Below are positions 19,501 through 64,000 of a DNA stretch of 64,000 bases, one piece after another. How positions within the stretch are numbered: the first letter of the stretch is position 1; each line of letters starts with the position of its first letter. Both the position numbers and the translations under genes were made by a program. The notes beneath the pieces were generated by a model. The model was given only the letters and a program-made list of their open reading frames with translations, was not told where the DNA came from and did no database searches. Location: positions 45,345,665-45,409,664 of the forward strand of contig NC_068982.1 of assembly GCF_001194135.2 (NCBI RefSeq). The letters run 5' to 3'. The DNA comes from Octopus bimaculoides. Its lineage: Eukaryota.

Positions 19501-20613
19501 AAAAGGTGAGTAATTACTTTATATTTTATTAAAAATTCAATAAAATAAGTTTAATATTATGATTGATTCAGTTTAAAAGTTTTAATATTTATTGATTTTT
19601 AAGGTGGCGAGCTGGCAGAAACTTTAGCACACCAGGCGAAATGCTTAGCGGTATTTTGTCTGTCTTTGTGCTCTGAGTTCAAATTCTGCCGAGGTCAACT
19701 TTGTCTTTCACACTCTCTGGGTCCATAAAATAAGTACCAGGTGAACACTAGAATCGATTTAGTCAACATAGCCCATCATCAAAAATGTACAATAACACCA
19801 GAGATCAAGAAGATTTATAAGGTATACTTTGACTGTCCACTTGGAGATCAGGACAAGTTATGGGCACTACATTTTATCTGCTCAGCTTGCTCAAATGGCT
19901 TACGTGACTAGTTCAATAATAAGTCCATTCCAGTGATATAGAGTTATTTTTGCAAAGTAAGTCACAGGATTTTCTATGAAGAATAAGCACAAAATTTGTG
20001 TATCTAAATTTGGACTCTGCAATGAGACCTGTGCCCCACAATGGAAGTTTGCCAATTCCAGTTCCACTAGATGATGGTATTGAAACATAAGACGATAATG
20101 CTGACTGTCACGATAGTGCTGCTGTGCTGCCGAGGAAGATTTGCATGGCTGATGATGAACATGGTGAAAGATTTCACCAGAATATTAGTGCTATGGAGAA
20201 ATGGCAGCAAGGCTTCTGGAATGACAGTATGCTGGCTGACTACTACTGGACACATTACTGTGATCAACCAGATCAGGAACACCGCAGGAAATCCAAATCA
20301 CAATGTTTCTTACTCTGTTGTTCTAACTTTGGTTTGTCTGACCCATTTTTTGTGTGTTCACTCTTTGTAGAATGGTAGTAATGATTTTTAACTCAATAAA
20401 CTCATTTACTTTCTAAAAATAATTCCCTTATTTATTACGTTAACGATTTCATATATACGGATATGTAAATATTTGCATGTATCTATCGAAAAACTGATAC
20501 GTGCTGCATACAAATGGAGTGAAATTTTGAAATCAACATATAAAATTAGTCTTAAAAAGTCGTTTGTATTCATAATGAGTATAATACATTTAATTTTGAC
20601 CACCACCACCACC

Positions 20614-29789: not shown

Positions 29790-30458
29790 AAGTTTGTATT
29801 AGTCCCACACACTGCTTGACAACTGGTGTTGGTTTATTTATGTCATTGTAACTTAGCAGTGCCCCAGTATGGCTACAGTCCAATACCTGAAATAAGTAAA
29901 AGATGAAGGATAAATCACTGACACCATAATTATAAATTTTTGGTGCCTTTTGATGTCAAGAAAGACTCAGTTATCTCAAGCATTTCAACAAGCAAATGAT
30001 AAATTCCATCCTTAACTTCCTTATATTTCAATTTTGCACAATAAAGGCAGCATTATTTGTTTTAGCCAGTCTACATTTCTCAGTTAAATGTTTATCATAT
30101 AAAAATATTATTTTAAAATATCACAAAGAATAAATTATTTTGTCTAAATTATATGAAAGTGTGATATAAAACTTTCCCCAAAAATATATGTTTTGGAATT
30201 TCTATTTTATTTTTTAAATATTTATTTTCAGGATCCATCTAATACTGCAGTTTATTCGAATATTTTTTATGAAACTTCTCCATATTTAAGACTAGCTTAT
30301 TTGTTGAACTCATCGGCCCCGTTTGGTCTTTGGACTGTTTCTGTGAAATATCTTGGAAGACATCTTGAGGTAAATAAACTTTTCTCTTATTTCTTCTTCA
30401 AAATACAAGGTGGGCCTAAAGTCATGCACCAAACGTTTTCCATTTTATTTATATTACC

Positions 30459-38900: not shown

Positions 38901-41900
38901 GATATGGCCAGTTTAAATGCTAGAGTTAAATCAGAAACCTTGCTTAAATGCTTGCAACAGAATGGTCTTTGCTAAAGGTTTCCATGTTGCTCTACTGTGC
39001 CGTTAGATCACATGATGCATTAAATTTGTCATATAAGTAGGCTATAGATCATGGAGACAGTGATAAATAATTGAGACCTTTGGTGGTATACCATGCTTGA
39101 GAAGACCTGTCAAGCCATGTGAGATTGTAGTCATTCATGGCCGATGCTGGTGTTGCATAACTGGCATGTAAAAAGCACCCACTACACTCTTGGAGTGGTT
39201 GGAGTTAGGAGGAGCATCCAGCCATAGAAACCATGCCAAATCAGATTGGAACCTGGTACAACTCTCCAGCTTACCAGTTTTTAGTCAAAATGTCCAACTC
39301 ATGGCAACATGGAATATGGATGTTAAATGATGATGATAATAGATTTGAACTCAGAAAGCCAAAACAAATACTGCCAGACATCTGCTTTGACTTTTTTTAC
39401 AGCTCCATCAATCTGTCATCTTGGATCATACTTTTTATGCATCTCAAAAGGATGAAATGTAAAGTTGACCAAAGCAGAATTAGAACTCAGAGAACAGAGA
39501 TTCTGTACAAGTGACACAAAATATTCTATCTAATGCTCTTCTTTTTTTTTTTTTGTGCCTGTTTATCAGCTAATAGTCAAATTGTATCTGTTTTGTGCCA
39601 GACTTTGTAAATATCTGACCATCTCTGTTTCTCATTTTTTTTTCATTCTAGCTTTATACTTTCTCTTTCTTACTCTCATTCTCTCTATTCTCCTCTCCTT
39701 TCCCACCATTACATAAATATATGGTGGATTCTCTTAACATAGAAGACAAATGATAGTTCCTGCAATTTCTTGTTGAACAACCTGCACAGACTTGTTTATA
39801 GTGAACAAATATTTGTGCTGCATATCAGCTCATTCTCACCACCAAATCAACATTTTCCTTGCATGCATGCATAGTGTACCACCTGTTAGAGCCAGATGTT
39901 GAAGTGATTGCAGAGCAATATTAAATGGAAAGGTTTGCTTAAGAACACAATGCACCACCCATAAGTACTAGACTTTAAAAATCAGTACTGAGGACAATTT
40001 ATTTGACCAAATCCTTCAAGGCTGTGCCCCAGTATGGCCACAGTCCAAGGACTGAAACAAGTAAGAGACAAAAGACAAGCATTTTCTCTAAAACTCTAAT
40101 GAGTTAGTTAATCTACCAATAACTACTGGGATCATTGCTATCAATGATTACATACACCTGTTGATATAGCAGTATGCTAATTACTGGTTGACTGAGAAAA
40201 ATTCAGTTAATTTAATCCTTAAACCACTCTCATCATCATCATTTAACATCTGCATTCCAAGCTGGCATGGGTTGGATGGTTTGACAGGAGCTGACCTGGC
40301 AGAAGACTGCACCAGACTTCTGTGTCTGTTTTGGCAGAGTTTTTATGGCTAGATGCCCTTCCTAACACCAACCACCCAGCAGAGTAGACTGAGTGCTTTT
40401 TATGTGGCACAAGCACAGGTGAGGTCAGTTTTGGCATGGTTTTTATAGCTGGATGCCCTTCTAAACACCAACCACTTTACAGTGTGGACTAGATGCTTTC
40501 TAAGTAGCAGTCCATGCAATTTTACATCGCTGATATGCTTTGAATGTAAATGTAGTTCACTCTTTTATCAGGAGAGATTTATTATATATTTACAATTTCA
40601 CCCTGTTTTCAGTTGATAAATTGTACAAAATAATGATTTTTATATATTTCAGATACATGTACAATAAACCAGTAGTTGGCCAGGTGTATATGGAAGCTAG
40701 TTATGGCAGAAGTTACTTTGATTCAATGCAGGTAAAGTGTTTTACAATTATTCTAAGTTTGCTGAAGCTTTTATCCATCTACTTTACACCCAACAATTTA
40801 TATCTTTGTTTGTTTTTGTGTCTGATTTTCATGTATTAACATGGATTAGATGAATATATTGTTGAGACTTTGTATTTGCAGCTGGATACCTTTCCTGTCA
40901 TTAATCCTTATCTGTTTTATAAGTAAGGGATCACTTACCCTATACATCTTTGTAAGTGCAAAGTCAGTGGATGATGTGATGATAGGGGAAAAGAAAAAAC
41001 AACAGCACTGCTTGTTGCTCAGCAAATGTAAACAAGCATACAAACACATAAAATGAAATGATGTCACTTCCTCAATGGGTTTTCTTCTACTCTTGTTTTA
41101 TTCTTGTCTTACCTTACTAGTGCCAGTGACGAAAAAAAAAAGTACCCAGTATATGCTGTAAGGTGGTAGGCATTGGAAAGGGCATCTAGCTATAGAAACC
41201 ATGTCAAAGTTGACGTTGGAGCTTGGTGTAACCCTGCAGCTTGCCAGATACTGTTAAATCGTACTACCCATGCTAGTACAGAAAATGGATACTAAGTGAT
41301 TGTTGTGGAGATTGCTAGCATCTAAATCTGTCCAATAGAAATTGCTGGCATGCGAATCTGTCCAATAGAATTGAATGGAAAGTTGTAGAACTCTCCAGAA
41401 TGTTCTAATGGCTTACTGCTATATAAGCAGAGCTGGTAGAGGGGCGTTTCTCTTTTTGCCTTTGTCTTTCCTGTTATATACTGTTTGGGAGACAGATAAT
41501 AAATCTATCTGGAGTATAACTGTGTTCTTCTTTGCAAGTGAACAAGAGAAGCACAACAGTGATGATGATTTTATATATATATATATTTATATAATATAGT
41601 TAGTATATAAGAGTTTATACATGGAGAGGACACCATCATGTGGATTCCTTACAGGCTAGAAAGGGCAGTCAAAACCCAAACCACAAAAAAGATATTGTTA
41701 CATTGTACGTTGCCTGTAGGACACTTAAATGAATAAAAATCTCTGTTAACCCTATACCAATGAATTTCACCATTGATGATCAAATAAATCAATTAATTAG
41801 TAAATCAATTGACTAATTAACCATCTGTGGCTTGTCGCTGGAAAATGCATAATTATGAAACTATAATACACACCGAAAACACAAAGTTTACACATGCGCA

Positions 41901-43148
41901 CTTAATTTGATTGTTATACATCAAAAATTCAAATTGAATGCTGCCAAACAACGTACAGAGTCAGAGTAGTACAGCAGTGATCACATGACCACGTATTCTG
42001 ATCCGATGTATTCAAATTTTATGGTCATCTTGTATTTCTGGCTACAATGCTTTTAGAAAACCTTTTTGCATATATGAGTTCCCATAAGCAACTTGTCTTA
42101 AAACCCACTGTTATGATCTTCAGAATTATAATAAGTAGGAAGGTATTGAGAATCAAGTCTTGATGGATACTTACTTGCACTCCAGATTGCTCATGGAATT
42201 CATTATCAACCCTCTCTGACTGCATAGCATGGCTAAAAGTTTGTGGCTGGTGCTCATTCTGACACTGAAGTTGCACCCATTCTGGGGGTTGATGTAGTAG
42301 TAACCTTTTTTAATAGGGAACCTCTGTGTTAACTTTGAGAGTTTTGTTGTAGAACTTGTCCTTTGTATTTTAAGTAGAATTGTGGGTTGGAGAATTAACA
42401 CTGACAAGGTTCACTGGACCTTTGGCTATGTGAATCCAAAGTGAAAAATCTGGATGGCCTTCTTGCTAAAAACCTTTTTTGCTACCTCTTTCAACAAGCC
42501 AGAATACTGTGTACCTATCCTAAAACCTTAGATACATATTCAATTCATTGTTAACCTTTTGATACAAACCAACCAGAGACTGCTCCTGCTTCTATGATAC
42601 AAACTTTGTTTTAAAGTGAAATGAATTGGATAAGGTAAATGTCTCCTAAAATTATATTATATTTACCTTAATTCAACCTTTGCCACCTGTTACATTCTTA
42701 TTTTCTTATCAAGGTAACAACATCTGTTCTTATTACATTTTTATATAAAAATTTAAACCTAATATTTAGATTTTCTATTTATGATTTCATTAAAGTTAGA
42801 AAATGGTAAGAGCAATTTCAGTATAAGATTGATGGAGAAACCTGCAAATCTTCACATGTTCCATGTTAAAGTTCGAGTTATTGAAAGCAACACAAGAGTG
42901 ACAGAATATAAAACTGATAACACAGCAACTTTTGTCAGTGTAAAAGAAAGTGATCCCAAATACAAAGTAAGTATTACATAAAAAATATATTCACAAAATA
43001 ATATTTAATTACTGTTTAAACAAGCATCTCCATTTCATCTTTCTTTCCCTTAACCCCATAGTGTTCAGATTATTCTGTTAAATGTAATACTTATTAATTC
43101 ATATTGTTTCAAACTAATCAAACATTATCTTGTCACTTTGAGATTTTG

Positions 43149-43189: not shown

Positions 43190-46100
43190 TTAATGTTCAT
43201 TGTCCATGCTGGCATGGGTTGGACGGTTTCACCAGGGCTGATAAGCTGATTGCTGCGCCAGACTCCAGTCTGATTCGGCATGGTTTCTATGGCTGGATGC
43301 CCTTCCTAATACCAACCTGTCCAAGAGTGTAATGGGTGCTTTTGCATGCCACCAGCACAGATGCCAGTTGTGTGACACCAGCACAGATGCCAGTTGTGTG
43401 ACACCAGCACAGATGCCAGTGGCATGATGCCAGCATCTGTCACAACTACTATTACATTTGGCTCGATGGGTCTTCTCAAGCACAGCATATTGCCAAAGGT
43501 CTCAGATGGAAAATATGAGAGAGAGAGAGAAAGAGAGAGAGAGAGGAGAGGGAGAGAGAGGTGAAGAGGGGATGGGAGATAAGGTGCTAAAGATGTGTCA
43601 AGATCCTATTTCACATGACTACATATTCTGATCCTATGTATTCATATTTCATTATTGCCCACAAGGGGCTAAACATAGAGGGGACAAACAAGGACAGACA
43701 AAGGGATTAAGTCGATTACATCGACCCCAGTGCGTAACTGGTACTTAATTTATCGACCCCGAAAGGATGAAAGGCAAAGTCGACCTCGGCGGAATTTGAA
43801 CTCAGAACGTAGCGGTAGACGAAATACTGCTAAGCATTTCGCTCGGCGTGCTAATGTTTCTGCCAGCTCGCCGCCTTGATCCTATGTATTCAGATCTGAG
43901 AGTTTTGTTGTAGAACTATTTAAGCACTGATTTGTAAGTAAATTTCTATTTTTAGGAGTTACAAGATGCCAATGAAAACAAATATTTTGAAGATTTATTA
44001 AGCAATCAAGAAAATGGGAATGTTTCAATTGCATTAACTCTAAGCGAAAAAGAAGTTTTAACAGTAAGTAAATATTTTCAACTGATGATTAATTGATGAT
44101 TATTTTCTTTTAGAAAATTGTTGTTGCTACCATGTAGTTCTGGTGTGACCTGGTCAATCCCTGATAAAGCGAATCTAATGTTTCAGTAGGAAAACTTATT
44201 TAAGAATTCTATTGCAATAACAAGTTACCTTTTACTTGATTCAGTCCTTTGACTGTGACCATGCTGGAGCACCACCTTTAGTCGTGCAAATCAACCCCAG
44301 GACTTATTCTTTGGAAGCCTAGTATTTATTCTATCGGTCTCTTTTGCCGAACCGCTAAGTTACGGGGACGTAAACACATCAGCATCGGTTGTCAAGCAAT
44401 GTTGGGGGACAAACATACACATGCACATACATATATATATATATACATACATACGACGGGCTTCTTTCAGTTTCTGTCTACCAAATCCACTCACAAGACT
44501 TTGGTCGGCCCCAGGCTATAGTAGAAGACACTTACCCAAGGTGCCACGCAGTGGGACTGAACCCGGAACCATGTGGTTCGTAAGCAAGCTACTTACCACA
44601 CAGCCACTCCTACGCCTATATTTAAAGTTTGTTACTTGTTCTGTTGGTCTCTTTTGCTGAACTGCTGAGTTATGAGGATGTAAACAAACCAACACCACAT
44701 GTCAAGTGCTTTGGGCTGACATACACAAACTCAAAGACACACACACATACATATATACCTACATAAATACATACATATTATATATAGGTAGTTAGGGTAA
44801 ATTCCAGCTGTTTCCTCTTGAAGCTCATCTGCTTCTTCTATTATTACAATACAATATGTGGTCACAGATGCTGCAGTATGTTTGTCAAAATACATATTAC
44901 ATATTGAAATTCTTTCTTCTGTCTGAAGAATTCTTCATAGGAAACTTATTACATGTCTATCTAACATGTAAAAGTTTGTAATTCCTATTAGCAAATGAAA
45001 CATGTGTAATGCAGAATAAATAATTGCAAAAAATTCCACTTTTCTGTTTTGTTATAAATAATACATGCTTGTGCGTGCGCACACGCGCGCGCATTCTGTC
45101 CCTCACAAAGCATTGCTTGTTCTACTATAAGTGGAAAACACTTGCCCAAGGTCTGTTCAGTCTTAGCTGATTTGGTTGTAAGCGAAGCAACAGTTTTGCA
45201 ATAACAATTTTACTATATTTGTTAAGCTGCTTTGTCAAATATCTTTGAACATTATAATGTTACTGAAGTCGTGGAGGCATAATGGCACAGTGGTTAGGGC
45301 AGCGGACTCGCGGTCATAGGATCGCAGTTTCGATTCCCAGACCAGGCGTTATGAGTGTTTATTGAGCAAAAACACCTAAAAGCTCCACGAGGCTCCGGCA
45401 GGGGATGGTGGCGAACCCTGCTGTACTCTTTCACCACAACTTTCTCTCACTCTTACTTCCTGTTTTTGTTGTGCCTGTAATTCAAAGGGTCAGCCTTGTC
45501 ACACCGTGTCACACTGAATATCCCCGAGAACTACGTTAAGGGTACACATGTCTGTGGAGTGCTCAGCTACTTGCATGTTAATTTCATGAGCAGGCTGTTC
45601 CGTTGATCGGATCGACTGGAACCCTCGTCATCGTAAGCGACGGAGTGCCAACAACAGCAACAGTTACTGAAGTGTTATTAACAATCACCTATTAGTAACA
45701 CAGTTAAGAAATGTCCTTCCATTTAAGTTTATTTGTAGATATTTTCTTTTTTTTAAATAAACAGTACTTTTTCAGTTAAAAAATTCCTTTGCTGACTTAG
45801 AAATTTATCTCTAATTTCATATTTTGTACAGGCTGGAATGAAAGTGAGAATCACTGCACAACCAACAGATACATCTGTGAGGACGCTTTATTATATGGTA
45901 AGAAAAATACTAAAACTTTATTTTTTTATACTTTATTCTTATATTAGTTTCAGTCATCAGTCTGAGACCATGCTGGGGCACAAACTTTTAGGGTATTAGT
46001 CACTCCCAATTGTTATCAGTAAAATTTTCTTTTTCTTTAAAATATACTGCTGCAGAGATTTTTGTTTCTGAAATCCTTCAATGAAACAATCCATCTATCT

Positions 46101-49100
46101 AATATTTCAAATTAATTAATTAACAAGTTAGATATTTTATTCTAATCTTTGGCTGAACTAGAATTCTATGCAGATAATTCTACAGCACATTAAATACGTT
46201 TCTATTCTTTTTTCTGCAATATTTTAATGGTATATGCTAGAATTTGACAAGGAATTCTATTTTTTGTCTTTGATAGGATGATGGAACACATAGCTTTAGC
46301 TTATGTTGTTATATGCTTCTATTTTTATGTGTTGAAACAAACAAGTTTAGTTTATGTTGATAAATGGTTCATCCTTTTGTATTGAAGCTCATGGGTTTGG
46401 TTTAATTTAATTTATATACACCTTGTCTTGCATGTCGAAGCACACAAGCTTGGTTTTTCTTCTTCCTCCTCTGTCTTGCCATTTTCTATGCTGGCATGAA
46501 TTGGATGGTTTGACAGGATTCTGCAAGGTGTAAGGATGTGTTGAGCTCTAATGCCAGCTTTGGTATGGTTCCTTTGGTTGGATTTCTTTCCGAATGCCAA
46601 CCACTCTACAGGTACAAGTGAGGTTACCAAATTAACTTGCTAGGCAATAAAAGAAAGGAATGAGAAGAAAGGGGAACAAAAGCAAAAAAAAAGGGGAAAG
46701 GAAAAGAAGGGAAAAACCTCCTTGAGAGAGCGAAGGGCAATGATTCTATGCAAGATGTTGAGAGACTAGAGTATGGTAGAAGAACAAGCACAGATGGCTT
46801 GTCATTGAGATACAAATATTTTTTCCATATCAGCCATCACTGAAGAGCATGTGATGTTACTCAACTATTTTGATATATAATATCTGGTTAGCTTATATCC
46901 AGTGCAAAACTGGTTGTTAAGATCAGTTGAAATAGATCTGTTATACTTCATACTTTGACTCACACTCCACCTTATGTGCTGAAGCATGCAGGTTTGGTTT
47001 ATGTTAATATATACTTCAGTCCTTGTATGTTGAAATACACAAATTTTCTTTCAACTCTTATCTATTTGTAAGTTGTGTTGACAATGATGGTGTTTATAAT
47101 AATGATGACCATATTATTTATAGCCTTCAAACAACATGGTAATTACTCTCTTGCTTCCTTCTTTAGAATCTTTATACAGTTAAAACCTATTGTTTTTTTT
47201 TTGGTACTTTAATCACCTGCTGCCATGAAAATATGTTGCCAAAAAATGGAAAACCCAAAAGTCTGTCTCAGACATGTAGTGTTTCTGCAGAATTATACAT
47301 GATAATCTCTGTCTGTTCAGAAATGCGGCAGATAAAAACCTAGTTTTAGTCAGGCTTTGATCAATTTATATCAGTCAACAGCATTTAATAGGGTAAAGCA
47401 GAAATATCTCCTTGTTGTACTTGTAATGTTAAGATATATATATGTGTGTGTAAGTGCAGGTTTATGTATGTTTGTGTTTTGTCTTGATAGTCATAAATGA
47501 ATGTTACTGTCATACAATTGGCATCATTCATTTCCAATATTCAGTCCAGTCTATGTAAGCATGGAAACCTGGATATTAATATGACAACGATGACGACAAT
47601 GACAACAGCAGTGGTGTTGACAGTGATGATAATGATGATGATAGCATCAAACTGCTTAAATATCATCTGTTTTCTGGAAAAAGAAAATCTCTTGTAAAGA
47701 TGGAGCATGTGTTTTTTAATATTTTTATGAAGAACTTTTGTGGGAAAAAGATCCATTGGTTACCATCAAATGTAGTCACAGAATGCTAAGTCCAAATTTG
47801 TGTAGGCATGATACGAGGCTAAGATGTCTGCAGAAATCTCTATGCAGTGGGAAGTTTTGGAAATCAATGGAGAGGGAAAGACGCCCTTTTAACATCGAGA
47901 GTTGTTGTTGTTGTTGTTGTTGCTAATGTTGAGTAACTCTAGGGCATTCCTGATTGAATAGATGTGATAAAACTAATTTAAAAAAAAAAATTAGGCTGAC
48001 CTTTGGTGTATGCTGTGCTTGAGAAGACCTGTCAAGCTAAGTGACATCACAGTCATGGCCGGTGCTAGTGTTGCGTCACTGGCATGTAAAAAGCACCCTG
48101 GAACATTGGGCAATATACTGTGCTTGGGAAGACCCATCAAACCATGTGAAATCATAGTCATGGCTGATGCCAGTGTTGTGTAACTGGCACCTGTGCCAGT
48201 GGTGAGTAAAAAGTATCATTCAACTGTTAGGTCTCACAGAGGCAGTGACAAGTGACTGAGATCTTTGGCGTTATATTGTGCTTGAGAAGATCTGTCAATG
48301 CAAGTGAGATCATAGTCATGGCCGATGCCAGTGCTGCATAACTGGTACCCATGCTAGTGGCATGTAAAAAGCACCCACTACGCTCTTGGAGTGGTTGGTA
48401 TTAGGAAGGGCATCCAGCTAAAGAATCCATGCCAAATGAGATTGGTGCAGCTCCCTAGCTTACCAGTTTTCAGTCAAACTGTCCAACCCATGCCAGCATA
48501 GAAAGCGGACGTTAAATGATGATGACGATGATGATGATGAGTTTATCTAGAATTACATCATTCAATGTGTCGTTTTTTAAAAATAAAGTTAGCAGCATAT
48601 GATTTGAAGGAGATTTCACTGCCATTTCTAGCAAATTGAATGACTATGTAAAAGCTTCCTTGTTGCCTTGAGTTTTTTCATCGACTGGGATTCCCTTGCT
48701 GGCCAGGTGGCATTTATATAAGAGTATGCGCAAGTATATGCATGTGTCTATATTTATGCATATGTGCATATGAGGACTGACAATTTAATTATTTCTGCAT
48801 GCATATAGCATCAAATATCTTGCAGAATTATAAACTAACCTCTGTTATTTATTTTTAATTTTTGCAGATTATTTCTAAAGGGAAAATTTTGCTATTGGAT
48901 AAAAAATCAAGCGGTCAGAAAGTTTGGAACTTTGAGGTGAACATCATAAGACACATGATCCCTACAGCCAAATTTTTAGTCTATTATTTTCAGAACGAAA
49001 GGATAATTACAGCATCTATAAACCTTAATGTATATGACATTTGTCCATATAAGGTAAAACTCACATGGCTTTAACTCCTTTGACCCCACTCTTTTTTTTA

Positions 49101-55388: not shown

Positions 55389-58300
55389 GAGTTAGTGTGT
55401 GTGAGTGTATATCAAATAAAGAACTTAAAATAGGTACATCAAGCATAAAAGAAGAAAATTGAAATTATCCAGATACTGTCTGAATGATGAATGACAGCTA
55501 AGTGTTTTGTCATTTCCTGTGTCATTTAGGATGTTAAACGAATTTAAAAATTTTAAAATATCTAACTCACCAGTCCATATGGTTATCACAGTAATGATTT
55601 TTGAATAGTTGAACATTTAGTATTTGTTAATGTGTTTAGTTGATTCTATTTTTGCTTTTTGTTTTTAGATTCACACTAATAAAATGGAATACCTTCCCAA
55701 TGAAAACATTGAAGTTGAGATATCTGGTTCACCAGGCCAACATGTTGTGCTATTATTTATGGACAAGGCTATGGGTTACATTGACAGCCGACCCAAAATT
55801 ACAAAAGAATTTGTAAGTAATCTTGCTTTTGTATTTGGTTTGCAAGGTTCTTGATGTGAAACTATGTGCTGAAACTGATATTATTATATTTTGGGAGGGA
55901 CATTATACCAATAATAAACACACACACCGATTCTGTTTTACTACGTTCTTCATTCAAACCTGGAACAGATCTGGAGGAGAGAGGGCATGTATGTCATTGA
56001 TGAGGTCACAAATGACAATGAAAGAACTCTGTCAGACATAACTGATTGATTGATTGATTGATTAACCATATGATTAATCAAACAATTCATTAGTTAATTG
56101 TTAACTGGTTAATTAGTCAATCACTAATAATCAAAAATGTCCAATAGAACCACTGCATATGTATATTATTGTAAATAATTATTTGTTAAAATTAAAATAA
56201 GTCAATGTAGCAAATACTTTTCTGTATTACAAAATTCTACAGTTTCCTTGATATTAAACAGATGAGAGATAAATATCCCTTTGGATAGAAAACTGTTCTA
56301 CTTCAGGTAGTTTTTCAGTGAGGAAGATTAAACATGCTCTGCAAGCCAATGATTTCTGCAGTAATTTCACAAAAATGCTGTGGTTTATAGTGGTTATCAG
56401 ATTTGCAATATCTACATATAGCTAGGTAGACTTTGCCATCAACAGTTAAAAAGACTTAACCATGAACAGTGTCTGGTGGGATTGGAAAGGAATTTCTGTA
56501 CTATGAGCTTCTCCCAAGTAACCAGACAATTAATTCTGAGAAATACTGCACACAACTGGATGAGTTAAAAGCAGCAATTCAAGAGAAACGTCCTGAATTG
56601 GCCAACAGGAAGGGTGTTGTTTTCCAACATGATAATGCAAGACTGTAAGTTTCTTTGGGAACCAGACAAAAATTACTGCAGCTCGGCTGGAATGTGTTAG
56701 CTCACCCTCCATATTCATCAGATATTGCTCCTTCGAATTTCCACTTATTCATGTCTCTGCAGAATAGTCTTAATGGTAAAAATTTCAATTCCTTGGATGA
56801 GGTAAAAAGATACCTTGATTATTTCTTTGCCATGAAACCACCTCAGTTCTGGGAAGAGGGTATTTTCAAGTTAAAGGAAAGATGGAGACGCATTGTGCAA
56901 CAAAATGGTTCATATTTGGTTGATTAAAAATGTAATGGCAAGTATTTATTGACCTTTTTCTTTCCTTTAAAAATCAGCAAGAACTTTCCGGACAACCCAA
57001 TATATATATAGATATGTATGTATGTCTATATTTATGTGTATGTGTCTTTGTATTGGTGTTTGTTCCTCAACCATCACTTGACAACTGATGTTGGTGTGTT
57101 TACATCCCTGTGACTTAGCAGTTCGGCAAAAGAGGATGATAGAATAAGTACTAGGCTTACAAAGAATAAGTTCTGAGGTTGATTTCTCTAACTAAAAACC
57201 CTTTAAGGTGGTTCTCCAGCATGGCTACAGTCAAATGACTGAAACAAGTAAAAGAGTAAAAGAGTACAATATAACTAAACAATGCATTTTTGGAATGAAC
57301 TGTACATGAAATTAATTTCTAAAATATAATATATTTTATTGTCTATGTTTGTTATTAAACAGCATATTGCTAATTTTGTTCTCTCTATGGATTATAACAT
57401 TTCTAGATAAGAGATGAAATGCTTTTGAATCTCCAAACTGATAGAATGCTGAATGTAAGTTTGCATTTTGTCATTTCATTTTGTTTTATTTAATTTTTAT
57501 TTAATTTAATTTTATTTTTATAAGCTCTTTACAGCAAGATGCCTGTTCTTTTCCCTTTATCATATCTTGTCACCTGGCATAGAGTCACTTCTCTCAATAT
57601 TACTTCCCACCTCAGCTGAGGGTGTCTTTGTCTTGCAAGTTACTTGGTGACCCTGCTTGGAGCTGCTGCCACATAAAAAGCACCCAGGACATTCTGTACA
57701 GTTAGGAAAAACATCCAGCTATAGAAACCCTGACAGGAGAGCTTCACAAAGACTTGTACCTTGCCAGCTCCTGTCAAACTGTCTAACCCATGCCATCATG
57801 GAAATGAATGTTAAATGATATTGATGATTTCAAAATGAATGTTAAATGATATTGATGATTTCAAAAGCTCTGTGGAGTGGTTGGCATTTAAGGAGGGCAT
57901 CCAGCCATAGAAACCAAGCCAAGACAGACTGGAGCCTGGTGCAGCTCTGCAGCTCACCAGCTCCAGTCACACCATCTTACCCATTCAAGCATGGAAAATG
58001 GATGTTAAATGATGATGAATATATTTTAGATTTATTTCAATGCAGGCATAGCTATGTGGTTAAGAATTTTTTTTGCAACAACGTGGTTTTAGTTGAGTCC
58101 CATTGTGAGATACCTTGGGCAAGTATCTTCCACTATACCCCCAAGCTAACCAAGCCTTGTTGTAAATTTGGCAGATGGAAACAGAATAGAAGCATCTCTG
58201 TGCGGTAGTTGGTGCTAGGAAGGGCATCCAGCCAAAAAAACCATGCCAAAATGGACACGGAAGCCTGGTGTAGTCTTCTACCTGGCCAGCTCCTGTCAAA

Positions 58301-61300
58301 CCATTCAACACATGCCAGCATGGAAGGCAGACATTAAATGATGATGTATGATGCGGACATATTCTATGCCCATGAAATGTCAAATAATACCAAGCTGAAT
58401 CAAACTGTTACTATATATCCTCATTGTCATTTAACATCCACTTTTCCATGCTTGCATGGGTCAGAGAGAATTTATTGAGGCAGATTTTGTATGGCTGGAT
58501 GCTTTTCCCATCACCAACCCTCACCATTTTCCAAGCAAGGTTACATTTTGCCATCACTGGACATGTCTTTCCACAGAAGTGCGGAAATAAACAGCATTGT
58601 TTATATGTTGGTGATGCTCATTTACAAGAATCTTGTGATGTTAAGACAAAGGTACACACAAATATACATACACACACTATGCACACACAGCACACAACAT
58701 CATCTACAAGAGTAGTTTAGATGTATTTGTACTTAGCATTTCTCATATTCATTTTTTCAATCTTTTAATGTTGAATATTTCAAATGAAATTCATTAACTA
58801 CTGTTTTTATTTTTCCTTTACAGAATTTCAAGCTCTCTTTAATTGGGAATAGTGACAAAAAGAGAAGAGATGCAACAGTTGCAAAAGAAAATGTGCTCAA
58901 TTCTCGTGCTGTTCCTTCTACCATTCCTAAGGAATCTAATTTTTTGGTATCTTATACATTTTAACTATTTAACTTAACATAAAGGCTTTTAAATGTACAT
59001 GTGCTCTTCTACTGCTGATTTACTTCCTAAATTACAATATTAACCCATTCACATTTAAACCAGCCATATCCAGCTCAAATATTCTACATATTTTAGGTTA
59101 AAACTGACCAGCTCCAACCTCTCACACCAAACCTACAATGTCATTTTGAAAATATATAAACACACCATTGAAATCTTGAAGCTACAAGATAATGTGAGAT
59201 TAATTCAAAACAAAGTGAATAAATAAGAAACATTTGACAAAGAAATCTGGATGTAGATATGAAATTGTAATGTCCCAAACTTAGCACAAATGTTATATTG
59301 TATATTCACATGCAAGTTGAATTTTATTTGAAAAATGCTTAGCCTTTTTAATAAATTTATTTTTTAAAAAATATGACCATAAAAATTAATTCAAATTAAA
59401 TTATATATTCATTTCAGCATATAAAAAAAGAAAAAGAACCATACAATTCTTAATAATTAAATTTCTAAAAAATATTGGAATTAACTTTATTTCTTATCTC
59501 TTATTCCATTCTGTTTGTATCTGCAGGCAGAGCCTTCCCCTATGTCTCAAAGTTTGTTCAATGCTAATGTTGCTGAAGACTGTAAGTCTAAATTTATATT
59601 TATATATATATCTAACCTTCATATATTGCTTCATTTGATAGTTTTTATTTGCTTTTTCCTGAAATATTTTTCAAGGTGTTTCAAAATGTTTTTATTATTA
59701 TTATTTTTTTTCTTTTTAAGAATCTCTTTTATTGTTTAGTCTGAAGAGAAGGCACTGCTCAGGAGATCCTTTAGAAGGCTCCTGAAGCTGGTAGGAGGGA
59801 AGGAGAAAGGTATCCTCAAAGTGGAGACTAGGTTTCAATGCTTGCAATAGAGTGGACTTCACTAAAGGCTCTTAAGAACTGGTGGTGGTGTTAAACTGGT
59901 CCTTGAGTGGCATTAGAAGAGCCCACTTTTAAGCTTTTATGCTAGGTCTCTGGTTTCAGGATATTTCTGACACCTACCTTCCTCCCATTAATTTTTAGAA
60001 GTCATATAAAATATTTTGAGTATTGCCTGAATGTTATGTAAATTAAAATGTTGCTAATTATTTGAATTAATATTTTAAATAATTTAAGGTAGTGAGCTGG
60101 CAGAATCGTTAGCATTCCAGGCAAAATACTTAGCAATATTTCGTCTGTCTTTACATTCTAAGTTCAAATTCTGCTGAGGTTGATTCTGCCTTTCATCCCT
60201 TTAGGATCAATAGAATAAGTACCAGTTGAGTACTGGGATTGATGTCATTGAATTTCTTCCCCTGAAATTGCTGGCCTTGAGCCAAAATTTGAAAGCGACA
60301 TCTTAAATAATTTATATCAAGCATTTATGACTCCATCAATTTTATTTATATCATTTTGTCTTCTTTTGTTTTCAGACTCGACTGATTCTTTATCTGGAAT
60401 GTTTTATGATCTAACATTGAGGTAATGTATATTTTCTGAAACTCTTTGTGAGAAATTGTTTTGAAGGGATATGCAGTTTTTTTTTTATTGGGTTATTCAA
60501 TGCAGTTATAATACTAATGAGAACCACAGATGTCTTAGTTGATAGCTCAGTGGTTCTCAACCATTTTCTGCCTATGGATCCCTTTGATTCCTATTCTACT
60601 CTACTGGACCCCCATAGCTATTCAATGTATATAAAAACCATCCTACTGGATTTTTGTAATTTAATGTTATTAGGAGTTGTATTAAAAATTAAAATATTCT
60701 GTGTATTAAAGAAGTATAGCCAATTTATTGTACATAAATTTTAACAATAAAATCCTATATGAACCCCGGTTGAGAACTACTGTAGCTAAAGGTTTAATTC
60801 TTTAGCATTCAAATCTGCCATATCTGGCCTAAATACTTTACCTGTTCTATGTTCAAATCAGCCAAATTCAGCCTCTTACATCTACCCCACAATATCATTA
60901 CCAAAGTAAAGAGTCACATCACAGAAATCTCATAGCTATGAGATAATGCATAACTGATTCAAAATAATGTGATTAAGTAAACATTACGTTTCAGAGTTCT
61001 TCTCACTCAACTCATGTGGTACCCAAACATCGGAGTGATTTGTGTACCCAAGCTTTACCAGGTGCTCATGAAGAATGGATTTTGATAGCTTGTGTATATA
61101 TATATATATATATATACACACACATTATTCTCCACTCTTACTGTGCTCTCTACACCTTCTGATTGATTCTTACATGTGTTAACAAGTACCTCCTTGCAAC
61201 AATGTAAACTTTCATTCAGTTAAGATACCCTTGGCCTGAAGAGTAGCCTACGGTGTACACCTCACTTGGATATTTACCACTTCCAAGGTTCTGCTTGCTA

Positions 61301-63926
61301 TGAAACATATGTAGCCCAGATCTTATCTACTCCATTCCTTAACTCTTGTATTCATATTCGCATACTTGGCAACCCTGATCACCGACCATGAAATATAAAA
61401 AAGAGACCTTTTTATAGTTTATCGTACTTTGATGTGAAAAAATCCACACTCTCCTATCTCAATGAACCACTATTGTCCTTGAAAGTTGTTTATTATATTT
61501 ACTATGGATTGGTTGAAGCTAACTTTCTTCCTACACCTTGATCCTTGGATTGATCCTGGTGTCATGTAACTGGCACCTGTGCCAGTGGCATGTGGATATA
61601 GCACCTTTCAAAAGTTGAGCCTCATGGAGGCACAGTGATTGATGCTGGTGTCTCATAACTGGCACCCATGCTGGCGGCATGTAAAAAGCACCTTTCAAGC
61701 ATTTGGGCCTCATGGAGGCAAAGTGGCCGATGCCGGTGACACGTGAAAAGCACTTTCCAAGTTTTGGGCCTCACAGAGGCAATGGTGAATGACCAAGGCA
61801 TTATGGCGTGAGGAAAGGCAAAGTCAACCTCAATAGAATTTGAACTCTAAGCATAATGGGTTGGTACAAATACCATAAAGTACTTTTCTGACACTTCTGT
61901 TGGCTTGCTGACCTTACTGTGAGGTGACTGTCGTTATCGTTAGACCTAACTCATCATAAATAAATACCACTATGAGTGCGCAATGATGCCATCAACAGGT
62001 TGGTCCTGAAACAACATGTATTCTGTCTTCATGACCCCATAAACTTGCTAGCATCCAGTATGTGAAGCTTTCAACTGGTAACACTTGCAACTGCGAGTTG
62101 TTTGCAAAAAAAATCCAATAGTAATAACATTTATATAATTTGTTCTAAAATCACACTATATATATATATATATATTTTTTTTTTGTCTTTCAACAGAAAT
62201 GATGGTATGCAGAAGATAAATTTCTCTTTACCAGATAATCTTACCACTTGGGAGATTCAAGGTTTCGGAATTATTGATAATACACATTTCTGTGTAGCTG
62301 AAATAGCTGAAGTGAAAACTTTCAAAAGTTTTGTTGTCAAAATGAATTTCCCTAAAGTTGTAAAGCAATTTAATTTTACAATGGTTACGGTTCTTCTATA
62401 TAACTATAAGAATACAGCTCTACGAGTAAGTTCCAGCATTACATTTATATGTTTTCCATTCAGTTTCATCATCATCCACATCATCGTTGTCATCATCTTG
62501 TGATCATATTTCATCATCATTGTCCTGCTCCTCCTCTTCATCATCATTATCATCATTATTATTGCCAATACTATCATCATCATCATCATCATCATCATAT
62601 TATTATCATCATTATTGTCCTTGCTGTCATCATCATCATATTCAATCACATTGTCATCATCACCACTGTCATTATTACCATTGTCATCATCGTTATTATC
62701 ATCATCGTTGTTGTTGTCATCATCATCATTATCATTTATTTCTGCTTCCCATGCTAGAATGGGTTGGTATGGGTTAGACCATGTCAGTTCGTATTTATTT
62801 GGAGTTATTTGTGTATGTGTGTTATTGTGTTGTGTTGTGTGTGTGTATATGGTGTTTAATGTGTGTGTGTGTGTGCATGCATGCACGTCAGTGTATACAT
62901 TTGTTCACATGCATGTGTGTTTATGCAGGTGTTTACATTTTGTGCTTCTCATGAAAATTACTGAGCTGTAAATAGTGACGTTTGCTGACATTTCCCAGTC
63001 AACAAATCCTTTAGTAGTTCTGTGCTTTCAAAGAGGAGTAAAATAAAACTCCCTTACTCGAAAAACAGGTATGGATCAGTAACAGGAAGGTTGTCCAGCT
63101 ATAAGACAATGCCTCAATAATGTTTATTTGTTTAACTTTTGTTAGTATGGAAAAATGGACCAGCTGTAAAACCCATGCCAAAACCCACCTTACCAGTACT
63201 GGTGCCACATAAAATGCACTCAATCCACATTGTAAAGTGGTTGGTGTTAGAAAGGGCATCCAGCCATAAAAACCATGTAAAAACAGACATTGAGACCTGG
63301 TGCAGTCTTCTGGTGATCCAGCTACTGTCAAACCTTCTAATCCAATGGTTCTCAACTATTTTTTGCTTGTGAACCTTGATTCCTCTTTTACTTGGGTGGA
63401 CTCCCATAGCCATTTGTTGTTTTTAAAAATCCCATATTTTTATATTTAAATACCATTGGGAATCATATATAAAAAGAATTTGTTAAAATACTTTGTGTAT
63501 TGTAGAAGTATAAGCAATATATTGTAGATAAATTTTAATTATATCTTATATGGACCCTGCAAGGGCCAATTAGACCCCAGTTGAGAACCACTGATCCAAT
63601 CTGTGCCAGCATGAAAAATGGACATTAAGTGATGGTGGTGGTGACGACGATGATATGTTTTGTTTTGTCTTACAAATTAAACCATTTTTATTTTCCTTTT
63701 TTGTTCCTAGGTACAAGTTACACTTCATGAATCAGCAGATGTTTGCTCATATGTCAATAGAAATGGACATCATTATGAAACAAGTGTTGATATTGAAGCA
63801 AATGAGTCTAAATCTATCTTTTTTGTTATTCGGCCTCTTAATTTAGGAAAATTTCCCCTTAAGGTCTCTGCAAGAGATACTGGATCAAATGATATAGAAA
63901 TCATTGAAGAAGAAATGTTTGTTCAA
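15355..63926 (+). CDS. C3-like: Complement C3-like thioester-family (A2M/C3/TEP) gene, partial: 18 exons covering MG1-MG7; 5' signal exon not found, 3' part beyond the window
   Basis: Manually joined GT-AG exons give one open frame of about 732 aa. It carries family motifs in the correct order: IFIQTNLPIY (cf. FIQTDKxIY), QEYIVPKF (cf. EYVLPxF), YMYNKPV (cf. YxYGKxV), YYMIISKGKIL, IPTAKFLVYY, DICPY, LLFMDKA (cf. AVDKG), KKRR, LPDNLTTWE, FCVAE, LYNY, DVCS, IRPLNLG. The family assignment is from recalled C3/A2M sequences, not a database search. Confidence 0.9.
15620..15995 (-). mobile_element. SINE family B copy
   Basis: cagtttccgtctaccaaatccactcacaaggctttggtcgg core. Confidence 0.8.
17245..17560 (+). 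mobile_element. SINE family C copy
   Basis: tRNA-like head, ccttgagcaagacactttattt core. Confidence 0.8.
17715..17935 (-). mobile_element. SINE family A copy (low divergence)
   Basis: Nearly identical to 43645-43876 and 52987-53218. Confidence 0.85.
18258..19142. mobile_element. About 885-bp foldback element with long inverted arms
   Basis: gacttaggaagcaccaacaagttggaattt / aaattccaacttgttggttcttcccaagtc; internal arms about 18410-18600 and 18755-18935 are reverse complements. Confidence 0.75.
19278..19505 (+). CDS. C3-like exon (MG1/MG2): NQVLFNISVEG...GHIFIQTNLPIYRRNEK
   Basis: tttttag|ga...aaag|gtgagt; phase 1 to 1; FIQTxxPIY motif. Confidence 0.9.
19805..20580 (+). mobile_element. Internally deleted DNA transposon remnant, CMC/Chapaev3-like transposase
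   Basis: Fragments YFDCPLGDQDKLWA.H.IC..C, YLNLDSAMRPVPH..SLPIP and DEHGERFHQNI..MEK..QG.W..SMLADY.W; superfamily name is from recall. Confidence 0.6.
22990..24420 (-). mobile_element. Highly decayed LINE ORF2 3' region
   Basis: Minus-strand fragments KKLDPIVNALCRLITG and GRVNVILNKW...C with many frameshifts. Confidence 0.45.
24509..24705 (+). repeat. About 92-bp tandem repeat, about 2.1 copies
   Basis: acttcgat..gtg...gatattgaggtgacttc...ggctgccct...aaaactcagtaa recurs at an offset of 91-92 bp. Confidence 0.8.
28503..28573 (+). CDS. C3-like exon (MG2): VTIRIFLLNETMHINKYQVLVTLK
   Basis: ttttttcag|ta...aag|gtaact; phase 1 to 0; fills the expected VxxRI segment between neighbouring exons. 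Confidence 0.85.
29580..29905 (+). mobile_element. SINE family B copy
   Basis: gactgtgtggttaagaagcttgc...ttgggcaagtgtctt head and core. Confidence 0.8.
30232..30369 (+). CDS. C3-like exon (MG2): DPSNTAVYSNIFYETSPYLRLAYLLNSSAPFGLWTVSVKYLGRHLE
   Basis: ttttcag|gat...gag|gtaaat; phase 0 to 0; DP-x-(G/N) and G-x-W-x-(I/V) motifs. Confidence 0.9.
30461..30544. repeat. (TAT)n microsatellite preceding a SINE A copy at about 30545-30780
   Basis: Visible directly in the sequence. Confidence 0.95.
32282..32522. repeat. Near-perfect inverted repeat: 86-bp arms with a loop of about 69 bp
   Basis: 32282-32367 versus the reverse complement of 32437-32522: 3 mismatches in 86 bp. Confidence 0.95.
35196..35318. 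repeat. (GTGTGT..ATCTAT) 14-16-bp minisatellite inside a SINE B copy at about 35070-35520
   Basis: Visible directly in the sequence. Confidence 0.85.
36420..36643 (+). mobile_element. TTAA-ended (piggyBac-like) MITE family E; other copies near 28940-29063, 36165-36320, 38721-38929, 43050-43150, 59040-59250 and 60795-60990
   Basis: ttaacccttNagNaNtcagatt... at the start and ...gtttaaatgctaaagNgttaa at the end; shared internal ggccagtttgaacataaaa. Confidence 0.65.
36866..36908 (+). CDS. C3-like exon (MG2/MG3 junction): LLKEKSSTFMVQEY
   Basis: ttttag|tta...tata|gtaagt; phase 0 to 1; F-x-V-x-EY motif. Confidence 0.85.
38523..38610 (+). CDS. C3-like exon (MG3): IVPKFQLEINTEPKLIAEDTDVVNVAVSAR
   Basis: ctttaag|tt...gcaag|gtaagt; phase 1 to 2; completes EY-IVPKF. 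Confidence 0.9.
40232..40500. mobile_element. Short retroelement family D ((CAT)n-terminated); many copies, e.g. 39080-39335, 43150-43500, 48000-48540, 57600-58350, 63130-63655
   Basis: Shared ggctggatgcccttcctaacaccaaccac core and catcatcatcatttaa end. Confidence 0.75.
40653..40731 (+). CDS. C3-like exon (MG3): YMYNKPVVGQVYMEASYGRSYFDSMQ
   Basis: atttcag|a...cag|gtaaag; phase 2 to 0; Y-x-Y-x-KPV-x-G motif. Confidence 0.9.
42796..42966 (+). CDS. C3-like exon (MG3 C-part): LENGKSNFSIRLMEKPANLHMFHVKVRVIES...ESDPKYK
   Basis: cattaaag|tta...aaa|gtaagt; phase 0 to 0; (I/L)xNG and V-x-V-x-E pattern. Confidence 0.8.
43645..43876 (-). mobile_element. Young SINE A with a perfect 16-bp TSD
   Basis: tgatcctatgtattca at both 43629-43644 and 43877-43892. 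Confidence 0.92.
43956..44063 (+). CDS. C3-like exon (MG4 end/MG5 start): ELQDANENKYFEDLLSNQENGNVSIALTLSEKEVLT
   Basis: atttttag|gag...aca|gtaagt; phase 0 to 0; open frame; aligns by eye to the C3 NSNNYLHLSV region. Confidence 0.75.
44230..44617 (-). mobile_element. Full-length SINE family B
   Basis: Ends cagccactcctacgcct (5' head on the minus strand), with an internal TA/CA microsatellite. Confidence 0.85.
45270..45662 (+). mobile_element. SINE family C variant with an 11-bp TSD
   Basis: gttactgaagt flanks both sides; tRNA-like head tggcacagtggttagggcagcggactc...tttcgattccc. Confidence 0.85.
45832..45897 (+). CDS. C3-like exon (MG5): AGMKVRITAQPTDTSVRTLYYM
   Basis: ttttgtacag|gct...atg|gtaaga; phase 0 to 0; cf. 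C3 PGETLNV...IRYYTY. Confidence 0.85.
48868..49053 (+). CDS. C3-like exon (MG5): IISKGKILLL...HMIPTAKFLVYYFQNERIITASINLNVYDICPYK
   Basis: ttttgcag|att...aag|gtaaaa; phase 0 to 0; I-x-S-K-G-x-I and P-x-x-x-(F/L)-x-x-YY motifs. Confidence 0.92.
50110..50516 (+). mobile_element. Full-length SINE family B
   Basis: A-box tggctgtgtggtaag, B-box ggttcagtccc, (aaagagta)n tail. Confidence 0.88.
50955..51103. repeat. (ACC/ATC)n low-complexity tract next to an N gap
   Basis: Visible directly; source of the spurious poly-His/Thr/Pro ORFs. Confidence 0.9.
52987..53218 (-). mobile_element. Young SINE A inserted into the head of a SINE B, 14-bp TSD
   Basis: atgagtggctgtgt at both 52973-52986 and 53219-53232. 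Confidence 0.9.
53988..54208. mobile_element. Mariner-like MITE
   Basis: TIR atgagagggtgctgagaagttcct / aggaacatttcaacaccctctcat. Confidence 0.7.
55669..55812 (+). CDS. C3-like exon (MG6a): IHTNKMEYLPNENIEVEISGSPGQHVVLLFMDKAMGYIDSRPKITKEF
   Basis: gtttttag|att...ttt|gtaagt; phase 0 to 0; cf. PGQ...V-x-L-x-AVDK. Confidence 0.9.
56465..57000 (+). mobile_element. Tc1/mariner (DD34D) transposase 3' half with right TIR, frameshifted
   Basis: VWWDWKG, FQHDNAR, HPPYSSDIAPSNFHLF, W..IV..NG.Y; ends gaactttccggacaacccaata followed by TA. Confidence 0.92.
57407..57454 (+). CDS. C3-like small exon (linker position): IRDEMLLNLQTDRMLN
   Basis: tttctag|ata...aat|gtaagt; 48 nt, phase 0 to 0. It has little family motif, so it is less certain and could be skipped in frame. 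Confidence 0.6.
58824..58946 (+). CDS. C3-like exon with tetrabasic site: NFKLSLIGNSDKKRRDATVAKENVLNSRAVPSTIPKESNFL
   Basis: cctttacag|aat...ttg|gtatct; phase 0 to 0; KKRR lies at the beta/alpha chain boundary position. Confidence 0.8.
59527..59581 (+). CDS. C3-like exon (bait/alpha-NT-like): AEPSPMSQSLFNANVAED
   Basis: tatctgcag|gca...gact|gtaagt; phase 0 to 1. Confidence 0.75.
60376..60421 (+). CDS. C3-like exon: YSTDSLSGMFYDLTL(R)
   Basis: gttttcag|ac...tgag|gtaatg; phase 1 to 2, which bridges exactly the phases of the two flanking exons. Confidence 0.75.
60548..60782. mobile_element. hAT-type MITE (second copy at 63343-63593, nested in a family D element)
   Basis: TIR cagtggttctcaacc / ggttgagaactactg; both copies share the internal AT-rich sequence. 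Confidence 0.75.
62197..62425 (+). CDS. C3-like exon (MG6b/MG7): NDGMQKINFSLPDNLTTWEIQGFGIIDNTHFCVAE...TVLLYNYKNTALR
   Basis: tttcaacag|a...cga|gtaagt; phase 2 to 0; PD-x-(L/I)TTW, CVA and LYNY motifs typical of the A2M/C3 family. Confidence 0.95.
62460..62740. repeat. Degenerate (ATC)n low-complexity tract
   Basis: Visible directly; source of the His/Ile/Ser/Asp-rich spurious ORFs. Confidence 0.9.
63711..63926 (+). CDS. C3-like exon (MG7): VQVTLHESADVCSYVNRNGHHYETSVDIEANESKSIFFVIRPLNLGKFPLKVSARDTGSNDIEIIEEEMFVQ
   Basis: ttcctag|gta...caa|gtgaat; phase 0 to 0; cf. C3 VELLHNPAFCS...VPYVIVPLKTG. Confidence 0.9.
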
Positions 63927-64000
63927 GTGAATACTCCAAAAGTAAATAATATATTAATCTATCTTCTATCTTTTACTTGTTTCAGTCATTAGATTGTACC

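Follow-up and report, generated by a model that had tools for sequence, protein, structure and literature searches.

The DNA analysed here is a stretch of 64,000 nucleotides (nt) of the Octopus bimaculoides genome (RefSeq assembly GCF_001194135.2, contig NC_068982.1, positions 45,345,665 to 45,409,664 of the forward strand), referred to below as the window and numbered from its first letter. It contains, on the forward (+) strand, the 18 first assembled coding exons of the second C3-type gene of this species, called C3L2 here. In the encoded protein, the ANATO domain of canonical cephalopod C3, with its six cysteines (Cys) in about 55 amino acids (aa), is replaced by a Cys-free segment that runs from a basic site up to the strand with which the MG6 alpha-half begins. 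As judged from sequence comparison, C3L2 is shown to have originated by duplication of the cephalopod C3 gene followed by fast evolution, and its membership of the C3/C4/C5 subfamily by descent is decided by three independent lines of evidence: the tree of thioester proteins (TEPs), the NTR/C345C module, and the basic site combined with the Cys of the motif FCVAE. The best explanation overall, namely a C3-derived paralogue with these losses that would act as a scaffold, is given a probability of roughly 0.7; the scaffold mechanism taken alone is put forward more tentatively, at somewhat less than even odds.

A cysteine-free linker in place of ANATO

The spliced reading of the four exons at 58824-58946, 59527-59581, 60376-60421 and 62197-62425 is, in order, NFKLSLIGNSDKKRR, DATVAKENVLNSRAVPSTIPKESNFL, AEPSPMSQSLFNANVAED, Y, STDSLSGMFYDLTL, R, NDGMQKINFSLP and DNLTTW. 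From KKRR to DNLTTW it comprises 72 residues without a single Cys, and the human C3 counterpart of this stretch (residues 672-796) comprises 125 aa. Both figures agree with those of a first-pass annotation made from the DNA letters, whose exon coordinates, splice sites and in-frame joins also proved right (AG acceptors and GT donors were checked, and the RefSeq model is identical), as did its statement that 55813-63710 holds no N gap, the last of the nine N runs of the window ending at 55195. The exon at 58824-58946 (phase 0-0; AG/GT; an exact match to the RefSeq protein) encodes the LNK end, then the tetrabasic site, then the linker up to its 26th aa, the putative beta-alpha processing site KKRR itself being at 58857-58868 (AAA AAG AGA AGA). 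Two micro-exons follow: the first (59527-59581; AEPSPMSQSLFNANVAED plus 1 nt; AG/GT) encodes the middle of the linker and is present in all isoforms of the three Octopus species, and the second (60376-60421; (Y)STDSLSGMFYDLTL(R)) encodes, according to its splice sites and alignment, the linker end together with the beta-strand that opens the MG6 alpha-half. Equivalent to the FPESW[LI]W strand, the latter aligns with FPESELY and FPESWLW, and its Argonauta version is ESLSGVFYDVKLR.

The four octopod orthologues of C3L2 have 0 to 1 Cys in the 170 aa preceding the DxxTxW motif, versus 6 to 13 in canonical C3/C4/C5, and all eight Cys formed by the LNK pair and the six of ANATO in canonical cephalopod C3 are absent from C3L2. 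The Cys-free junction is common to all isoforms of the three Octopus species in RefSeq/ENA. At the DNA level, no ANATO-type Cys pattern (CC-x-C or C-x-CC) was found in any frame of the + strand over 58947-62196, and tblastn searches with the ANATO segments of eight C3/C5 proteins, including canonical C3 of O. bimaculoides, found no ANATO trace in the window, the best match (E 0.07) falling in an unrelated repeat at 3.8 kb and E never dropping below 3.8 within 55.8-63.7 kb. The first-pass annotation had considered that transcripts might include an additional Cys-rich exon between 58946 and 62197; none exists in the isoforms of the four species or in the intron DNA. The intron after the MG6 alpha-half exon carries a long (ATC/CAT)n-type microsatellite (62440-62760, +) with His/Ser/Cys-rich low-complexity frames, and the sole full CC..C..C..CC pattern of the region is a spurious one generated by this microsatellite.

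The replacement segment agrees with the short Ser/Pro/Asn-rich stretch described at first: it is 48 aa long in Octopus and 67 aa in Argonauta, Cys-free, rich in Ser, Ala, Asn and Pro, and strongly variable between species. In Argonauta hians, RKRR is followed by a longer, proline-rich, Cys-free linker. No region of C3L2 differs more between Octopus and Argonauta than the linker, whose 34% identity is matched only by the short first CUB segment; between two Octopus species the linker has 84% identity, and of the eight regions compared only C345C (79%) is lower.

The valid test for ANATO in these proteins is the Cys motif, the Pfam model PF01821 being blind to the genuine ANATO with six Cys in canonical cephalopod C3: in canonical octopus and Euprymna C3 it detects nothing, even at E up to 1. 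Full-length scans of the same proteins also give NTR scores at or under the cut-off. Domain-based surveys may consequently misreport cephalopod C3 architecture, since the Pfam ANATO and NTR models miss or underscore these domains, as is suggested by the description of E. scolopes C3 with an A2M..A2MR architecture lacking C345C (PMC11312191).

The basic site differs between species (KKRR in O. bimaculoides, KKKR in O. sinensis and O. vulgaris, RKRR in Argonauta) and lies in the same alignment columns as the beta-alpha sites RTKR, RYKR and RRKR of canonical C3; this column-for-column correspondence bears out its initial description as a C3-type processing site. A furin-type cleavage at KKRR would, we infer, divide the protein into two chains. 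C3L2 also retains a pair of Cys aligning with the interchain-disulfide pair of human C3. The first (codon 49042-49044, in DIC), kept in C3L2 and canonical C3, is aligned in human C3 with the Cys of 'KDSC', presumably the beta-chain partner in the interchain disulfide; the second (codon 62291-62293, in FCVAE) is found in every C3-clade row displayed and is absent from the CD109 and A2M rows.

Besides ANATO, the thioester has been lost. All four octopod C3L2 proteins have SYGSGEQ at the thioester motif, versus PYGCGEQ in canonical C3, and the catalytic histidine (His) is replaced by tyrosine (IIYKEMMG versus VIHKEMMGG), both sites being encoded outside the window. Compared with a functional C3, C3L2 is thus without the six-Cys ANATO, without GCGEQ and without the catalytic His. 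With ANATO gone, C3L2 can release no C3a-like peptide, and with neither the thioester Cys nor the catalytic His it cannot attach covalently; the latter two losses rule out both covalent tagging of the C3b type and covalent trapping of the A2M type. The TED (residues 813-1105 of XP_052832929.1) is the most conserved part of C3L2: it is 97% identical in two Octopus species, and its identity is 77% when Octopus is compared with Argonauta, versus 79% for canonical C3. In this Octopus-Argonauta comparison, MG, CUB and C345C domains reach only 34-60% in C3L2 versus 68-94% in canonical C3. Conservation of the TED despite the lost thioester Cys and His points to a conserved non-covalent function.

A proposed scaffold mechanism and a bait-like alternative

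The ANA domain is the source of C3a, and it is also a steric element that has to be removed or moved for C3 to reach its active form. In human C3, the ANA end crosses the MG ring to the C3b-like form only after furin cleavage, uncleaved pro-C3 being unable to do so (bioRxiv 10.1101/2024.04.15.589532). By the mechanism proposed for C3L2, the secreted protein would be cut at KKRR by a furin-type convertase, giving disulfide-linked beta and alpha chains, and the new alpha N-terminus would be a thin flexible tail and not a folded ANA plug. Given the crossing requirement of human C3, passage of this tail across the MG ring would be unhindered, because the ANA domain is replaced by a thin tail. Mature C3L2 would then be constitutively open, in a form resembling C3b, C5b or cobra venom factor (CVF), and could serve as a non-covalent binding scaffold via its strongly conserved TED and its C345C.

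An AlphaFold2 model built with a 17-row alignment (mean predicted local distance difference test, pLDDT, of 64) is good for MG6 and MG7 only; a model built without alignment (pLDDT 33) was not used. Both halves of MG6 and MG7 have pLDDT values of 80-92, and the sequence GMFYDLT of the second micro-exon supplies the opening strand of the MG6 alpha-half (residues 192-198 of the modelled fragment). KKRR and the linker, including the micro-exon at 59527-59581, are modelled without secondary structure at pLDDT 25-37, and the LNK remnant as a helix of low confidence (fragment residues 107-117, pLDDT <50).

The same gene lends itself to another functional explanation, which we consider rather unlikely although it fares best among the alternatives: the linker may be a bait-like, protease-sensitive region as in A2M or mosquito TEP1, the protein staying closed even once processed by furin, rearranging only upon cleavage of the linker by a foreign protease or one of a cascade, and then working as a non-covalent protease trap or sensor. 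Bait regions typically evolve fast in the A2M family, and the linker is the fastest-evolving part of C3L2; it is also modelled at very low confidence and would be exposed by analogy. Its position is that of the A2M bait region and of the LDLa insert of MCR (PMC9363628). The bait-like character of the linker consists, however, in this position and the low model confidence, C3L2 being outside the A2M clade and descending from C3 and not from A2M, with a C345C domain that has no role in trapping. Furthermore, covalent capture is impossible once the thioester is gone, and inhibition by monomeric A2ML1 is reported to be thioester-dependent (PMC9156758). The conserved basic site, finally, suggests a constitutive rather than a pathogen-triggered cleavage.

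Placement among thioester proteins and gene layout

A neighbour-joining tree was computed from 42 TEPs over 1282 columns with 200 bootstraps, the sample including C3/C4/C5, CD109 of vertebrates, molluscs and arthropods, insect TEPs, vertebrate A2M and bacterial outgroups, with canonical cephalopod C3 represented by Argonauta, O. vulgaris and the clusters holding Es-C3 and a Sepia protein. C3L2 joins canonical cephalopod C3 with 100% bootstrap support, nested in mollusc C3 (83%) and, more broadly, in the C3/C4/C5 clade (100%), and CD109/iTEP and A2M fall outside the clade that holds it. Each half of the alignment gives the identical seven-member cephalopod clade, and the nearest non-orthologue of C3L2 by distance is Argonauta C3 (1.55, versus at least 1.9 for all others). 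The C3 lineage proposed in the first-pass annotation, with A2M, iTEP or CD109 as the placements that would speak against it, is supported by this phylogeny and by the presence of the C345C/NTR module. In each of the four octopods, C3L2 and canonical C3 sit on separate chromosomes or scaffolds. No orthologue of C3L2 from decapodiforms (squid, cuttlefish) was present among the protein-search matches, which does not establish its absence.

Domain content is consistent with the tree. Isolated C-termini match the Pfam NTR/C345C model (PF01759; curated cut-off 21.9 bits) with 32.9 bits in O. sinensis and 26.6 bits in O. bimaculoides, the Argonauta C-terminus remaining under the cut-off (18.3 bits), and the Cys skeleton of C345C aligns with that of canonical C3. 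MG2, MG3, A2M_BRD, A2M, TED_complement and A2M_recep are above their Pfam cut-offs, MG1 is under its own (17.4-17.5 for a cut-off of 23.6), and the Pfam scan gave no match to MG4 or CUB. The top matches of the exon encoding the MG6 alpha-half in a library of 1.84 billion proteins are C3/C4 proteins. For MG6 alpha-half to MG7, scores favour C3/C5 (54 bits, versus 42 for CD109 and 30 for A2M), and vertebrate C5 and CVF are among the top sequence matches; phmmer searches of hand-picked pieces of upstream exons against PDB gave only E values of 0.4-1.1, to CVF and C4.

Several observations nevertheless weigh against the explanation favoured here. The tree was built from distances, and C3L2 forms a long branch in it. 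In a whole-protein phmmer search of PDB, human CD109 ranks first (253 bits), ahead of C3 (239), C5 (231) and A2M (193), a top rank that may stem from the uninterrupted alignment of an ANATO-less query with CD109, and a Foldseek search of PDB with the model of MG5-MG7, which also has human CD109 at the top, matches the TEP classes about equally, without separating them. Some orthologues are named 'CD109 antigen-like' by NCBI. The K-K-[R/K]-R of Octopus is a weaker furin motif than the R-K-R-R of Argonauta, K at P4 being suboptimal. The TED, the thioester region and C345C lie outside the window, so that knowledge of them comes entirely from the identical RefSeq protein, and the evidence for the splice layout of C3L2 consists of gene models from four genomes.

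Part of these observations would fit a reading in which C3L2 is a thioester protein of the CD109/iTEP type, the absence of ANATO being then normal and the finding trivial, and the best full-length match after the orthologues is indeed a mite CD109. CD109, insect TEPs and A2M share with C3L2 the lack of ANATO and a flexible, protease-sensitive or bait segment splitting MG6 at the same position, together with similar scores and fold. We regard this reading as very improbable, given that the tree joins C3L2 to cephalopod C3 at 100%, apart from the CD109/iTEP of molluscs, vertebrates and arthropods, that an NTR/C345C module undetected in the CD109 and A2M entries scanned is present in C3L2, and that the FCVAE Cys and the beta-alpha basic site are of the C3 type, CD109 and A2M having neither at these places and forming separate clades. 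The GSGEQ of C3L2 is, moreover, not an intact thioester motif, and the same gene is called 'complement C3' or 'complement C3-like' in other releases. Membership of CD109, as read from the names and the PDB ranking, is thus contradicted by the tree, the NTR module and the Cys features.

The C3-derived gene has three RefSeq products, XP_014770265.1 ('complement C3-like isoform X1'), XP_014770266.1 and XP_052832929.1 ('complement C3'), and orthologues of the same layout in O. sinensis (XP_029658479.2), O. vulgaris (CAI9718465-7, 'complement component 3') and Argonauta hians, database names varying from complement C3 and complement C3-like to CD109 antigen-like (the last in O. sinensis and Argonauta). 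The Argonauta orthologue, found by an exhaustive HMMER search, is 53% identical to the exon at 62198-62425 and colinear with the window exons from MG3 on. The protein is ~1465-1474 aa long and its open reading frame uninterrupted in the four species. Isoforms differ only in the N-terminus, in skipping of the MG5 exon, or in five residues of C345C: the exon corresponding to the MG5 exon at 48868-49053 is left out of the annotated O. vulgaris isoform CAI9718466.1 (1412 aa), and other isoforms have or lack a 5-aa FLDTD insertion in C345C. That the linker reflects an artefact, i.e. a normal ANATO exon missing from a gap-rich assembly (nine N runs, exon 1 absent from the window) or skipped by what are gene models only, is the least credible alternative of all, with no N run past 55195, an identical Cys-free junction in the records of four separate species and in all isoforms, neither a Cys-rich open reading frame nor a tblastn trace, and a joint loss of the LNK Cys pair, thioester Cys and His that makes up a coherent derived state.

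Residues 40-777 of XP_052832929.1 match the 18 window exons (15353-63941) exactly by protein-to-DNA mapping, which places exon boundaries to within 2 nt or less, and the rebuilt splice model of the four linker-region exons is identical to residues 550-701. Residues 1-39, start codon and signal peptide (MVLLKVWLYFMVVQLVS) included, have no match in any frame of the window; the first coding exon is either in an N gap (N runs upstream of 15353 are at 749-991, 6482-6684, 8078-8166 and 10178-10427) or upstream of the window, and its absence probably accounts for the truncated N-terminus of the older models XP_014770265/6.

The upstream exons, all of them exact matches, start with MG1 at 15353-15514 (STEYMMFMPKVF to KVFEG, residues 40-93, with a weak Pfam MG1 match), and the MG1 end and MG2 start are at 19280-19504 (NQVLFNISVEGN to PIYRRNEK). 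MG2 continues at 28502-28573 (VTIRIFLLNETMHINKYQVLVTLK) and 30232-30369 (DPSNTAVYSN to KYLGRHLE), and the MG2/MG3 junction is at 36866-36907 (LLKEKSSTFMVQEY). MG3 is encoded at 38525-38611 (VPKFQLEINTEP to VAVSAR) and 40654-40731 (YMYNKPVVGQVYMEASYGRSYFDSMQ), and shares the exon at 42796-42966 (LENGKSNF to DPKYK) with MG4, which extends through 43956-44063 (ELQDANENKYFE to EKEVLT) into the MG4/MG5 exon at 45832-45897 (AGMKVRITAQPTDTSVRTLYYM). MG5 and the start of the MG6 beta-half are at 48868-49053 (IISKGK to VYDICPYK). The next exon, at 55669-55812 (AG/GT; IHTNKMEYLPNE to RPKITKEF), encodes the MG6 beta-half and aligns to human C3 575-618, and the one at 57407-57454 (IRDEMLLNLQTDRMLN) is a shortened LNK remnant without the LNK Cys pair. 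Beyond the linker, the MG6 alpha-half and the MG7 start are at 62197-62425 (NDGMQKINFSLPDNLTTWEIQ to YKNTALR; placed by alignment and by a Pfam A2M match at 7e-21), and MG7 at 63711-63941 (VQVTLHESADVCSY to FVQVNTPK; exact match). The gene continues past the window, with CUB, TED, MG8 and C345C beyond its end. The seven exons from 55669-55812 on (57407-57454, 58824-58946, 59527-59581, 60376-60421, 62197-62425 and 63711-63941) all have AG acceptors, GT donors and in-frame joins.

Two remnants of mobile elements were observed in the window. A mariner-type transposase remnant (56466-56924, +; Pfam Transposase_1, E 3e-11; internal stop) lies in the intron between 55669-55812 and 57407-57454, and a retroelement fragment at the start of the window (3-557, +) has an open frame with zf-RVT, the reverse-transcriptase zinc-binding domain (Pfam E 3e-10).

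Related C3 forms in molluscs and beyond

The closest relatives of C3L2 are the canonical cephalopod C3 proteins, such as Euprymna scolopes Es-C3 (ACF04700.1), O. bimaculoides XP_014786592 ('complement C4-B-like'), O. sinensis XP_029649275.1 and Argonauta GAB1607029.1. Besides the sister position at 100%, they share with it the order MG/CUB/TED/MG8/C345C, the alignment columns in which the basic site lies, the pair of Cys in MG6 and the Cys skeleton of C345C. Unlike C3L2, they have the LNK Cys pair, RTKR or RYKR followed by the six-Cys ANATO (DFCC..C..C..CC), GCGEQ and the catalytic His; their length is ~1680-1700 aa, and the MG, CUB and C345C domains evolve faster in C3L2.

Comparable reductions are known outside cephalopods. 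From the gastropod 'C3-like type I', the alpha-beta site has disappeared together with ANATO and the thioester, ANATO-less isoforms occur in several gastropods, and the same study counts one C3-like gene per cephalopod, the canonical one (Peng et al. 2022, PMC8960428). Similarly, BgC3-1 and BgC3-3 of Biomphalaria have C345C, and are without ANATO and the Arg-rich site (Duval et al. 2020, PMC7016707). Like type I, C3L2 is a mollusc C3 paralogue with C345C, a lost ANATO and a non-conserved thioester, but its basic site is kept in four species. Another protein fitting type I is Patella vulgata XP_050417000.1 ('complement C3'), with C345C and without ANATO, GCGEQ or a basic site. In the tree, which was built without published type I sequences such as BgC3-1, the Patella protein is placed elsewhere than C3L2, and the losses in C3L2 and in the gastropod forms look parallel because C3L2 groups with cephalopod C3 and not with gastropods.

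The closest match in architecture is a protein of the clam Mercenaria mercenaria, XP_053379890.1 ('complement C5-like'), of which we found no published description. It has RAKR followed by ~60 Cys-free residues, no ANATO, and an NTR score above the Pfam cut-off; a GCGEQ-type motif was looked for in it and not found. It differs from C3L2 in retaining the LNK Cys pair and in belonging to the bivalve C3 group of the tree, which makes its ANATO-less form one of independent origin.

In vertebrates, C5 works without a thioester, and CVF, after processing, without the C3a and C3d parts, both being non-covalent scaffolds that use C345C. C3L2 is orthologous to neither: unlike it, C5 retains ANATO, the release of which is the activating step, and the CVF precursor is C3-like with ANATO.

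The claim of an undescribed cephalopod branch of complement was overstated as first worded, the gene being annotated in RefSeq and ANATO-less C3-like genes being known in other molluscs (PMC8960428, PMC7016707; Mercenaria, Patella); what stands is that our literature search for the octopus C3L2 paralogue found no paper describing it. The octopod case itself, the joint loss of thioester and His, and the strong conservation of the TED are unreported in the literature searched. C3L2 is therefore an apparently independently derived addition to the ANATO-less C3-like genes of molluscs, and is unusual among them in retaining the processing site. It also means that cephalopods have two C3-type genes, versus the single one counted in PMC8960428.

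For annotation, the placement of C3L2 corrects the misleading name 'CD109 antigen-like', and the failure of the Pfam ANATO model on cephalopod ANATO domains is a warning for similar surveys.

C3 is usually described with a fixed set of domains, from corals to humans. C3L2 is a conserved and selected gene in which ANA, the thioester and His have been dropped and the processing site, TED and C345C kept, and thus represents a natural deletion experiment, showing which parts of C3 stay useful without covalent tagging or anaphylatoxin signalling. Stripped-down forms of C3 appear to have evolved more than once in molluscs, in snails, a clam and octopods. We further speculate, as an idea that is unlikely to be right, that in the ANA-less and thioester-less C3 of octopods cleavage at KKRR might alone produce a permanent, soluble platform of the C3b/CVF kind, offering its highly conserved TED and its C345C for non-covalent binding, to a factor-B-like protease or a receptor for instance, and that octopods, a venerid clam and gastropods could have arrived at such forms in parallel. 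If true, such parallel ANA-less C3b/CVF-like forms would constitute a recurrent and so far unrecognised second arm of mollusc complement.

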